Assembly (NCBI GenBank): GCA_964270895.1
Contig: OZ185438.1
DNA length: 64,000 bases
Origin: Podarcis filfolensis
Taxonomy: Eukaryota
Strand: one strand, 5' to 3'
Below are positions 132-28,535 of this stretch, in pieces. The notes under the pieces are model-generated. The model worked only from the letters and a program-made list of their open reading frames with translations. It ran no database searches and was not told the origin of the DNA. Each line of letters begins with the position of its first letter. Positions within the stretch are counted from its first letter, which is position 1. The translations under genes were made by a program, and so were the position numbers.

Positions 132-1855
132 GTAAGCACTAATTATATTTAAAATTGATTAGAAATAAATTGCATGTAGAAAAGGGAAATTGTTTAATTG
201 TGAATATGACTTTTGATCATACCTTTTTTCTGTACATAGTAGAAATAATTAGCTTTTGACACAAAAATTAACTTTTTATGCATGCTAACTTGATAAATCA
301 AATTTTAGAACAGCTTTATTCGCAGCACAGTTATTCTTCATGTTTATTATCATTTTTTTTCATGGAGGGGTATTTTGCCTATACTAGTGTGCTTCTGTCT
401 TGGATGCTAGTTTCTTTCACAGGCATGAATTTCTTGTTTTGTGATAAGTGTGTTTGTGTTGTTCTTCAAACTTTGGAAAGAAAATCTTTGATGGTGAATA
501 TGAAATATTTATTTCTAGTCCTAGGGCTCTTGCATTCTGGAAGGCTCCAATCCTGATAGTTTAAGTTAGGCAGTAGGTGTCTTTCCTAATTCAGTTTGCT
601 CCTGCCTTCATCGAAAGCAGTCAGGCTGCCATTAAACTCCCATCTCTACTCTGCTGAGACAATATATTTCTTTCTTTGTATGACTTTTCAGTCTGTCCTT
701 CTGCCTTTTGCCCTACTTGCATTTGGCTTATTTTCTACCTTATGTGGCTCGCTGGTTCACATTTTCTCTACTTTCTCCTAAAAAAACCCCAAACATTTTA
801 AAAAACATTAGCATCAACACCTTTGCCTCCTCTTTGTCTAGCCTCTTCTCTATCCCCCCCCCCCCCGCTTTTTTCTGGCTCTTTGGTGGAGAGTGGTGAG
901 AGTGGAATACCAGCCTCTTTAAACACAACTTTAGGTCCAGGTGTGAGTGCTGTATCAGTGTTTCAGAAGTGTCCCTTTAGTGGGAATGACAGCAGACTGC
1001 CTTTCCTCTGCAGTGTCTCGCGATTCCAGCCAGCCAGTAGCCCACAAGGCAACAGAGGCTCCTGACTGGATCTTAAGAGTAGTATTCCATTGCTAGGGTA
1101 AAGTCATCCTCCCCCAGTTAGATTTGACTACAATATTTTGTCCTAGATAGGTCCTAGTTTCTCCTTTGTTGCTGTTATGGATTTCTTGTACAATTAGGCT
1201 GGCCTAAATTCCAACATAGATAGATGCTGATTTATAAAGGCAACATGCAGTGAAAGATTGTTCACTAATACTGCACCATTTTCTACTGCATACTGAAAAC
1301 CCAGTAAACGAATGGGTCTAAAATATAAGCATAATAGCTACTGAGCATACAAGCCAAAACTCAAGTTTCTTGTTACTATGGTTATCAGTATTCTGCTCAT
1401 ATTATTGGCACTTTATTTTACAGTATATGTACATGTCACATATTTTACTGCTCTACTCCTTTGTCATTAATTGGAGCCTCACATTACAAAAGTGGCAGGA
1501 ATTCTTCCTGACATAGAGAGATATGGTTTAAAAACTTGTCCTGCTTAATTTCTGCATCTTAAGATAATGTTAAAGGCACCAGAAAAGAAAAAAAAGTGAT
1601 AAGTGTAGATAGCAATACTTTTTCAAAATGTTAAATGGTTTACTGGGAACATTGCATACTTAACATTTATGAAGCAAAACCTGGTGAACAATAGTTGCCA
1701 CTTCACAGCTTTCGCTCCTATTTTGTTCATTGCCCTGAGCAGGGATAAAATTCAGACTGGCAATATTTTTAAAAAAATAAGTCATAAGGGGAAGTTGATT
1801 GAGGAATACAGGAAGAGAAGTAAACTCTGAGCCTTATATATGTGTTTATATAAAA

Positions 1856-2050
1856 TTATGCTTCTTGTGCTGAGAAGCCATACTGTGAGCCATACTTGTA
1901 ATATGCTAGAAGATGCAAGATACTGTTTTCTGGTGCAACATACAAATTTTTGAAGTAGCGTAAAATAGATTCCTTCATCTCAGAGGGTTTTGAAGATCCT
2001 CTCAGAATTTCTTTCATTTCATTCAGACCTACTTCAGCCATCTCTCATTT
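1856..2050 (-). mobile_element. Possible degraded L1/Tx1 ORF2 fragment
   Basis: Peptide EMKESILRYFKNLY resembles the L1 ORF2 'IQTTIREYYKHLY' region; short and degenerate. Confidence 0.35.
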
Positions 2051-2759
2051 TGTAGAATGCGAAGAGAGAAAACTATTTTTGCTGTGTATATTCCATCTAC
2101 TAGGTTAAGAAAGGCAATGCTACAGAGAAGAAAGCACATAGCACTGGTGGAAAATACTTAATGCAAGTGCTGAAACTGGCCATAAATTTTGCCTTAGCTG
2201 TTTAACATTCTGAGCAGAATAACAGTGTGTTGCTATCTGCCACAATGAAAGCTTAAAAGGTCAATGAGAGATGTATTTCCCTGAACACTTGAGGACTTAC
2301 AGCAGAATACACAATTTTCTAGTTTCCTGGCTCATATCTAATATGTTTTTGGAGCTGTGTGTGGAAGGAGCTGAAGCCATTAAAATTATTTATTAGTTAA
2401 TTTTTAATTAATAATTTTTAAAACACCCTCTTCATTTAGATATCAGAACAGTGTACAAAATAAGACCAAAGTGGTCATACCACCATAGTAATAGTGAATA
2501 ACTTGATGCTAATAAGGATAACAGTCTGCACCAATCATACTTCTACATGCTTTACACTGTATGCATGATAAACACTCTGGCAAACGTAAGTGTACCTGAA
2601 GATTAAATGATACCATGGCTCTTACAAAGTGACTTAGAACAATCACATGAGACATGCAACTCATGTGTACCAATTAAAGAAGCTACATTTTAATTTGAAA
2701 TGGTAAATGTTGCATGGCTTACTATATGCCTAAAAATAATGGATCCTGGTATACAAGTA

Positions 2760-3062
2760 CCATAAGCACTGATAACTGGGAAACACTGGCCTGCGAGCAT
2801 TCCAACTGGAGAACAGCCTTTACCAAGGTGTCACAGACTTTGAAGGAGCATGAACTCAAGGTGAAAAGGAGAAACGAGCTAAGAGAAAGACAACCCCTCA
2901 CCAAGATCAACTCCCACCTGGAAACCTCTCTCCCCGCTGTGGAAGACCGCGTGGATCCAGAATTGACCTCCACAGTCATTTACGGACTCACTGTTAAGAT
3001 GGTGTTCATGGAAGACAATCTTACTCAGCTACGAGTGATCACCAAAGAAAGAAGGGAAAGAA
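2760..3062 (+). mobile_element. 3' end of an RTE-clade LINE
   Basis: Frameshifted reading gives TDNWETLACEHSNWRTAFTK then EKRAKRK...PPGNLSPRCGRPRGSRIDLHSHLRTHC* (stop 2995-2997), the RTE C-terminal zinc-finger motif. Short 3' UTR and purine (GAA-like) tail follow. Confidence 0.85.
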
Positions 3063-27260: not shown

Positions 27261-27457
27261 CTGAAACCATAGAAGAAAAGCCTGCAGATTCCCTGCAAGA
27301 CTTGTATCGGTCCTTGGAACTAGCTAGCTTGTCACCTTTAGGAGACCAGCAAATTTCTACAAAGATGGAGTACAAGAGGTATTTTATTAAAAGATGCAGT
27401 GATCCGGTAGTCAATGAAAAATTGCACCAGTTGCGAATTCTGAAAAGCACTTTAAAG
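27261..27457 (+). CDS. CNKSR2: CNKSR2 penultimate coding exon (197 nt, phase 1 to 0)
   Basis: Acceptor ttctctgtgtcttacag|, donor AAG|GTGAGT. Encodes (T)[65 protein letters not shown], matching human [30 protein letters not shown]...LRILKSTLK. Confidence 0.96.
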
Positions 27458-28319
27458 GTGAGTTAATTAGGGGGTCAGCAAATTTCACAAAAGGAGAGTA
27501 TCCTGCATAGAACTCGAGGGATATATTGCACATATTTAAAAACAGACAGGCACTGGGAAATGCTGTACACAAAAGAGGTTCGAAGAAAGAAAGAAAACTT
27601 TAGTTTCTCAACAACAACAAACACGTTTATCTCAGTTCCCATTTTAATGAAGAGTTAATCTGCTTCTGGTCCATTCTGTGGTAAATGAAGACATTATCCA
27701 TAAGCCTGGTGATGTCACAGATATTTAGATACTATCATATTGCTTTGTGTACTTCAGAATATGAAATAATTTTGCCCAGCTTTCAAGATTTCTCATAGCA
27801 GTATAGAATTTTTTATGTATCTAGGTACCATGCTCTGAGAATTCCCTTTTTGCCAATACATAGTAAATAATGTAATGATAAATATATTCCTCAGACACCA
27901 GAAAGAAATCCCTTATGTTCCTTAGCATCTCTTTCTGTTGATATGACAGAGATCCTCTTTATGTTCTATTGCTTGTCATTTTCTGTACCCCCCCCCCGCT
28001 CCCCCCTTGTTCTTCGCTTGTTTCCATCACAGCTACATATACACCACTTTAGAAAAGTTTATTGGGGATGTTCCAAAATCTCAAACCACCACTAATTCAG
28101 AGCAAGCATTCAAATTAGTCAAAACACCAAACAGAGTGGTTTTCAGATTTTTTTTTAGGGAGCTTCCCACTGGTCTTAAAATGAAGCTATTAGGGATTTT
28201 ATCTAGAAATGGCATCTCAAAGTACAATGGTATCTCAGGGATGTTCTTTAAAAGCTTACGGCACAAGACGAAGGGTGCTTTGTTCCTCATTCTGAACAGA
28301 TCTTTTTGTTTTCTCCCAG

Positions 28320-28535
28320 GCCAGAGAAGAAGAAGTAGCCATCATAGATAAAATTCTGGATAATCCAGATCTGACATCTAAAGACTTTCAAGACTGGAAA
28401 CAAATGTACCTTGACCTGTTTCTGGATAGTTCTCAGAACAACCCTTCAGAGGACCTTGTAAATGACTCTGATGAAGTTGATGCTCTTCTAGACTCTTTAG
28501 CGCACACACATTCCTATATTGAAACACATGTATAA
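28320..28535 (+). CDS. CNKSR2: CNKSR2 last coding exon, ends in class I PDZ-binding motif ETHV
   Basis: Acceptor tttttgttttctcccag|. Reads [36 protein letters not shown]...[12 protein letters not shown] (TAA 28533-28535), matching the human C-terminus. Confidence 0.97.

Follow-up and report, generated by a model that had tools for sequence, protein, structure and literature searches.

A candidate last exon for the short CNKSR2 isoform

Inspection of a 64,000-nucleotide (nt) stretch of the genome of the lizard Podarcis filfolensis (contig OZ185438.1, assembly GCA_964270895.1; hereafter the window) showed the 3′ end of CNKSR2 to lie on its + strand. Within the 27-kb intron that follows the exon ending at position 131, the stretch between ~18.4 and 21.1 kb is very probably an alternative last exon of a short CNKSR2 isoform, the counterpart of mammalian CNK2B, or MAGUIN-2. 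The intron is preceded by the 3′ part of a CNKSR2 exon (1–131; + strand, as for all features below unless otherwise indicated), which ends in phase 1 (...ENQEDE plus A), is followed by the donor GTAAGC (132–137), and has a translation that agrees with squamate CNKSR2 proteins. The long form continues in the penultimate coding exon (27261–27457; 197 nt) and in the last one (28320–28535), which provides the C-terminus -ETHV. Comparisons were made with a 29-kb locus of Phrynosoma platyrhinos (L001), reached via a fragmentary gene model matching the last exon, and with a 65-kb turkey locus (L008), reached via a partial turkey gene model. Runs of the letter N are present in both loci; the window contains none. 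The penultimate and last coding exons are 85.8% and 89.8% identical to those of Phrynosoma, respectively, and positions 33563–33709 of L008 align to the exon ending at 131. The CNKSR2 protein of the window was nearest to lacertid CNKSR2, the tail of the Zootoca protein being almost the same. A first-pass annotation of the intron had listed a read-through stop at 142, an exon ending in -TSKV at 18177, a protein-like 56-codon frame behind an acceptor at 18421, and two microexons, of 9 nt (19725) and 20 nt (22735). All five were found in place when the sequence was re-read.

The proposed last exon extends from 18421 to 21135, its 3′ end being approximate. It lies behind an AG at 18419–18420. When the donor at 131 is joined to 18421, local translation reads A/GC TAA, a serine codon followed at once by a stop (18423–18425). 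The junction sequence TGCTTTATCATATTAG/GCTAA, which covers the 16 nt before the AG and the 5 nt after it, is the same in the window, Phrynosoma platyrhinos and turkey. Two poly(A) signals (AATAAA) are found further downstream. The proximal one (20076–20081) is kept in the window, Phrynosoma and turkey; the distal one (21109–21114) is kept in Phrynosoma and lies inside a block that aligns to turkey. Conservation stops near 21180, ~70 nt past the distal signal. As read from the sequence, the anatomy at 18421 is that of a terminal exon with a 3′ untranslated region (3′-UTR) of 1.7–2.7 kb: a 3′ splice site usable after a phase-1 donor, a single residue and then a stop, and poly(A) signals and a 3′-UTR of its own.

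The sizes of the known proteins agree with such a tail. MAGUIN-2, with 896 amino acids (aa), corresponds to the 1032-aa MAGUIN-1 minus its last 137 aa (PMC10040811), and human CNKSR2 isoform 3 has 898 aa as opposed to 1034 aa (PMC8774548). The split codon and the last two exons of the window add up to 1 + 65 + 71 = 137 aa. Taken together, these figures indicate that the known short form has one unique residue, as the acceptor at 18421 predicts. One-residue tails are also present in NCBI models: ...EDK-S in Chamaea, Strigops, Caloenas, Taeniopygia and Tyto, and ...GDK-S in Delphinus. Use of the 18421 acceptor after the exon that ends at 131 would generate AGC (Ser) with TAA immediately behind it, followed by cleavage after the AATAAA at 20076 or at 21109. 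The short protein would end in ...ENQEDE-S and would lack the last 137 residues, among which are the CRAC region, which binds cytohesins, and the PDZ ligand -ETHV. Skipping of the 18421 exon, with splicing from 131 to 27261, would give the long form.

Alignments to Phrynosoma cover 17948–19204 (81% identity over 1276 nt) and 19536–21182 (73% over 1722 nt), two blocks that are colinear in both lizards, as well as 22099–22274, 22638–23048 (71%), a few small blocks, and the two coding exons. Those to turkey cover the exon ending at 131, 3360–3407, 13603–13743, 18323–19111 (75%), 19687–20131 (78%), 20727–20882 and 21000–21147. Two segments are near-invariant. Core 1 (18374–18623), which contains the 56-codon frame, is identical to Phrynosoma at 244 of 250 positions (97.6%) and 81% identical to turkey; core 2 (19892–20115), which carries the proximal AATAAA, is 94.7% identical to Phrynosoma. 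For comparison, the identity to Phrynosoma is 70.7% for the canonical 3′-UTR and 39% for ordinary intron. Perfect runs reach at most 83 nt in core 1 and 86 nt in core 2 when Phrynosoma is compared, and 39 and 35 nt, respectively, when turkey is; these are too short for a strict ultraconserved element (at least 200 bp at 100% identity), and 'near-invariant' is the accurate term. The split between lacertids and iguanians dates back well over 150 million years, and that between squamates and birds ~280 million years. Upstream of the acceptor lies a conserved intronic flank (17948–18420), in which squamate conservation starts at 17948 and bird conservation at 18323; its identity to Phrynosoma rises from 71% over 17953–18299 to 88–98% by 18349–18420.

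The same region matches a tail annotated in a snake. The short-isoform tail RLHEYNAVLI of Erythrolamprus, as read from the alignment between the window and Phrynosoma, corresponds to 18321–18358, where the window reads (R)LHDCITNAILI and Phrynosoma LHDYVTNAVLI, each followed by a stop; the window has no AG in that register. The Erythrolamprus tail thus maps ~100 nt upstream of 18421, which indicates that the same block serves as a terminal exon in a snake.

Other searches of the block were negative. Rfam gave only one sub-threshold match to a long non-coding RNA over 17800–23200, the folding of the 250-nt core showed no structure signal (z = −0.65 for the + strand, −1.54 for the − strand), and exact words of 26 and 24 nt from this core had no match in two metagenome scans. 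Separately, Phrynosoma contains an insertion of ~1.2 kb between the two cores (L001 ~3220–4400, corresponding to window positions 19351–19379) that is absent from the window and from turkey.

Splice signals and rival readings

Splice sites were scored with a rough position matrix. Among the 1839 AG dinucleotides of the intron, the acceptors at 19725, 18177, 22735 and 18421 ranked 11th, 18th, 138th and 209th; the true acceptor at 27261 would rank only 34th if placed among them. At thresholds set by the weakest of the sites in the first-pass annotation, the intron holds 143 acceptors and 21 donors, which define nine open phase-1 internal-exon candidates, and 4 of the 143 terminal read-outs end in [S/T]-x-[V/L/I]. 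Laxer thresholds yielded 13 AG..GT pairs that resemble microexons, with lengths of up to 30 nt. The listed candidates are not above chance on splice signals alone. Since these signals prove nothing by themselves, conservation must decide. Two features stand out in the alignments, namely the acceptor at 18421 together with what follows it, and the exon of 20 nt. Neither the -TSKV frame nor the 9-nt unit as a coding microexon does so.

Several points weigh against assigning the end of the short form to the exon at 18421. Its acceptor is weak, scoring 4.9 on the rough matrix, and chance alone produces a serine codon plus stop behind an AG at 19 places in the intron and at 14 in the turkey stretch. 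Unlike mammalian CNK2B, the lizard exon is known from genomic sequence alone, and the -S tail is in none of the annotated isoforms seen from the same genome; it is from the genome that we infer its use in Podarcis. Orthology with the mammalian exon would follow from the tail and the protein sizes. There is, in addition, a minor rival source of a one-residue tail: turkey has a serine-stop site at L008 37734 within a small conserved element, and the lizard counterpart (3399) would give a methionine and a stop, although no conserved exon body follows.

This element and the read-through of the donor at 132 are the two other places where the short form might arise, which on the available evidence is quite improbable. 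Reading through the donor (132–143) gives A/GT AAG CAC TAA, that is S-K-H and a stop (TAA 141–143). Such tails exist: SKH or SKY endings are annotated in turtles, an owl and Pseudonaja, and turkey DNA (SKYGIF...) confirms that they derive from donor read-through. The read-through stop of the first-pass annotation is therefore real sequence with annotated equivalents elsewhere, but its three residues do not fit the short form, since read-through adds at least three residues and not the single one implied by the 896/1032 and 898/1034 pairs (PMC10040811, PMC8774548). Moreover, the mouse short form has exon-20 junction reads (PMC8820740), and is thus spliced rather than read through. As to the other place, window positions 3360–3407 correspond to L008 37695–37742, a 48-nt conserved element ending in a pyrimidine tract plus CAG (up to 3398 in the lizard and 37733 in turkey). 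After the CAG, the lizard (CAG/TGTAA) reads TGTAATAAA, a methionine and a stop and then AATAAA, while turkey (CAG/GTTAG) reads GTTAGTAAA, a serine and a stop, in an arrangement that resembles a juxtaposed 3′/5′ splice site. Only the first 8 nt of the would-be exon are conserved, with no conserved UTR behind them, which argues against 3399 as the end of the short form. The element itself could represent a terminal exon in a proximal position or a site of recursive splicing. A strong serine-stop acceptor of turkey (L008 37398) was also considered as the short-form site and was discarded, being not conserved with the lizard; its sequence is presumably a common avian repeat.

Other readings concern the conserved block itself. 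That it consists of intronic enhancers or other non-transcribed elements, with a coincidental acceptor and serine-stop, is very improbable: many near-invariant non-coding blocks of neuronal genes are enhancers, serine-stop sites are frequent by chance and the block is known here from the genome, but the acceptor is exactly conserved, bird conservation starts ~100 nt upstream of it, the poly(A) signals are kept with conservation ending just past the distal one, an annotated snake terminal exon maps into the block, and the annotated -S tails agree with the predicted product. It is unlikely, too, that the lacertid exon begins earlier, at 18177, giving a short form that ends in -KTKTSKV, a lineage-specific tail resembling a class I PDZ ligand. 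This candidate (18177–18199; acceptor 18175–18176) reads AG ACC AAG ACT TCT AAA GTC TGA, and its -TSKV tail (18188–18199) fits the class I PDZ-binding pattern, [S/T]-x-hydrophobic at the C-terminus. In its favour, the acceptor scores 9.7, above both 18421 and the true site at 27261, it lies in the squamate-conserved flank, and the acceptor of this terminal exon can shift upstream in snakes. On the other hand, the AG is lost in Phrynosoma (CAA for CAG), where a 1-nt insertion also shifts the frame, turkey has no alignment upstream of 18323 and hence none at 18177, endings of this type arise by chance as well, and the tail was seen in no annotated isoform of the same genome or of ~20 squamates. 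The exon ending in -TSKV, proposed as an alternative C-terminus, is thus present in the window but its splice site and frame are not kept in relatives. Finally, translation of the 56-codon frame is hardly credible, whether it be taken for an alternative coding exon or for a small nested gene. The frame runs from stop to stop (18421–18591) behind TAG/G, is open throughout and barely varies between the two lizards. Its phase is not that of the upstream exon, from which phase 1 reaches a stop after one codon, and it does not behave as a protein-coding exon: all three substitutions with respect to Phrynosoma are non-synonymous, as are 12 of the 13 found in the first 35 codons with respect to turkey, where deletions of 17 and 2 nt break the frame. 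It had no Pfam match, and a word search limited to proteins of 31–98 aa found no relatives. The acceptor in front of the frame appears real, and the frame would represent the first 171 nt of the short-form 3′-UTR.

The 20-nt cassette exon and other elements of the intron

Apart from the proposed last exon, the intron contains a 20-nt cassette exon candidate (22735–22754) that stands on an isolated island of conservation. Its AG, 19 of its 20 bases and its donor (GTAAGA) are kept in Phrynosoma, and the annotation of this species uses the donor. The two lizards agree at 86% of positions in the 100 nt before the exon and at 72% in the 50 nt after it; beyond that, the value drops to 57%. Inclusion of the 20 nt shifts the frame, leading to the tail TTSYDLQLKP and a stop at 27270–27272, in the penultimate exon; in both lizards the product reads T[T/I]SYDLQLK[P/L] and terminates at one and the same position, 185 nt ahead of the last junction. 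If the unit were joined directly to the last exon, local translation indicates that the frame would be kept. In its sequence, the unit has the marks of a poison or frame-shifting cassette, as splice sites, length and flanks are kept and the stop lies more than 50 nt before the last junction. We give about an even chance to its being a real, separate second alternative exon, possibly a new one. Its inclusion would truncate the long form or send the transcript to nonsense-mediated decay. The proposal of a 20-nt microexon at this site holds as regards the conserved splice sites and the exon-like profile in Phrynosoma, but not as regards the frame, which is not preserved. The TTSYDLQLKP tail was in no annotated isoform seen, and turkey gave no match to the unit, although L008 may not extend that far. 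A turkey terminal exon beginning with TTLFH was considered as its homologue and rejected: the DNA places it 1.8 kb upstream of the conserved block, and it has no match in the lizard.

The 9-nt AG..GT unit (19725–19733) lies inside the conserved 3′-UTR of the proposed short form. Both its splice sites are kept in Phrynosoma, with the same length, but the unit measures 11 nt in turkey. The site pair listed as a 9-nt microexon is present, though embedded in the UTR and not length-preserving, which does not correspond to a frame-preserving neuronal microexon. In-frame insertions at this junction are present in NCBI proteins of other reptiles, namely INEK (12 nt) in Eublepharis (P0188 and P0189) and TSLFETDP (24 nt) in Chrysemys (P0252 and P0262–P0264), indicating that real microexons exist in this intron in those reptiles. 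A search of the window with their back-translated patterns found neither of them.

Another island (13603–13743) shows 73% identity between lizard and turkey over 142 nt. The conserved stretch ends directly behind a donor-like CACTG/GTGAG (13738/13739); an acceptor-like TTTAAG is present near 13625, both species have phase-1 stops, and the lengths are 113 and 108 nt. A short tail of Strix, RKCNESFG, may map to this island, which may be another non-coding or poison exon. Close to the donor, an 860-aa isoform (P0167), from the same genome or a close relative, ends in SKSRCEFCISVSEVSL, its last nine residues being encoded at 951–977 (region 935–980); to fit, this model requires a GC donor at 136–137 and an acceptor at 933–934, and the window encodes C where the protein has F.

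Downstream of the last coding exon, the canonical 3′-UTR of the long form (28536–29519) shows ~71% identity to Phrynosoma over 1 kb and ~73% to two reptile Logan contigs (L002 and L003). An open frame of 591 aa lies on the − strand at 34491–36266, tail-to-tail with CNKSR2. In Anolis sagrei, a gene for a 634-aa BTB/BACK/Kelch protein falls within the annotated range of CNKSR2, ~35 kb short of the end of that range. Lizards thus differ either in gene order or in how far the CNKSR2 annotation extends in the 3′ direction. Within 14 kb, a sturgeon locus (L007) had no more in common with the window than the last two exons, although the sturgeon intron may be longer. Pfam analysis of four exon and frame translations gave nothing meaningful. 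The first-pass annotation had also mentioned a homology between the C-terminal region and IPCEF1; a search with the last exon returned CNKSR2-like and PH-domain proteins, none of them named IPCEF1, and so did not confirm it. The kinship of the family is stated in PMC10272126.

The long/short switch of CNKSR2

The intron had been pictured as a switchboard of alternative C-termini, able to toggle cytohesin binding and PDZ-ligand identity independently. What stands of this is a conserved last exon for the short form and, probably, one 20-nt exon; new C-termini are mostly unsupported. Independent toggling finds no support either, for the conserved events remove both functions together: the 18421 exon, and the 20-nt exon followed by the penultimate one, would each eliminate the CRAC region and -ETHV. 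The only putative route that would separate cytohesin binding from the PDZ ligand is the direct, in-frame joining of the 20-nt exon to the last exon. The intron would be the seat, mostly, of the already known long/short CNKSR2 switch.

In several respects the proposed exon resembles that of mammalian CNK2B/MAGUIN-2 (isoform 3), with a branch after the same exon, a one-residue tail, loss of the last 137 aa including CRAC and -ETHV, and a 3′-UTR of its own. It also resembles the Cnksr2 3′ ends of mouse hippocampal area CA1, where two mutually exclusive ends follow exon 20, the short one being reached via a splice junction; in this tissue the short mRNA is kept in cell bodies, where it is dominant, and the long one is found in dendrites and is bound by FMRP (PMC8820740). 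The near-invariance of the short-form UTR is an observation of the present analysis that is not stated in the papers cited. As for the proteins, CNK2A carries the CRAC region and the PDZ-binding motif, and only CNK2A, not CNK2B, rescued cell migration (PMC10272126).

The 20-nt exon is comparable to poison cassette exons coupled to nonsense-mediated decay in its conserved splice sites and flanks and in the position of its stop, but its conservation is between two squamates only, and its product could be a stable truncated protein. Neuronal microexons measure 3–27 nt and usually preserve the frame. The 9- and 20-nt units recall them in size and in belonging to a neuronal gene, in which in-frame insertions of 12 and 24 nt occur at the same junction in a gecko and a turtle; they depart from them in that the 20-nt exon is not frame-preserving and the 9-nt unit has 11 nt in turkey.

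The ~250 nt that follow the short-form stop are more conserved than the coding exons (97.6% versus 85.8–89.8%), and we infer that near-invariant sequence in the UTR may control exon choice or mRNA fate. Somewhat speculatively, the 20-nt exon might be a second, independent squamate off-switch for CNK2A, acting through decay or a third, truncated tail. Equally speculatively, these ~250 nt might form a cis-element for the choice of terminal exon or for retention of the short mRNA in the cell body.

Three ideas on this intron are removed as unsupported: the PDZ-type -TSKV tail as a new C-terminus, coding by the 56-codon frame, and a microexon of 9 nt. The 20-nt exon remains as a new candidate. Only the long CNKSR2 form binds cytohesins and PDZ proteins. 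The terminal exon proposed here for the short form is placed in a reptile, and its splice site, stop and UTR of ~2.7 kb are kept from lizards to birds, which suggests the switch between the two forms to be old and tightly constrained. The constraint on the UTR makes its near-invariant segments candidates for the elements that control this switch.

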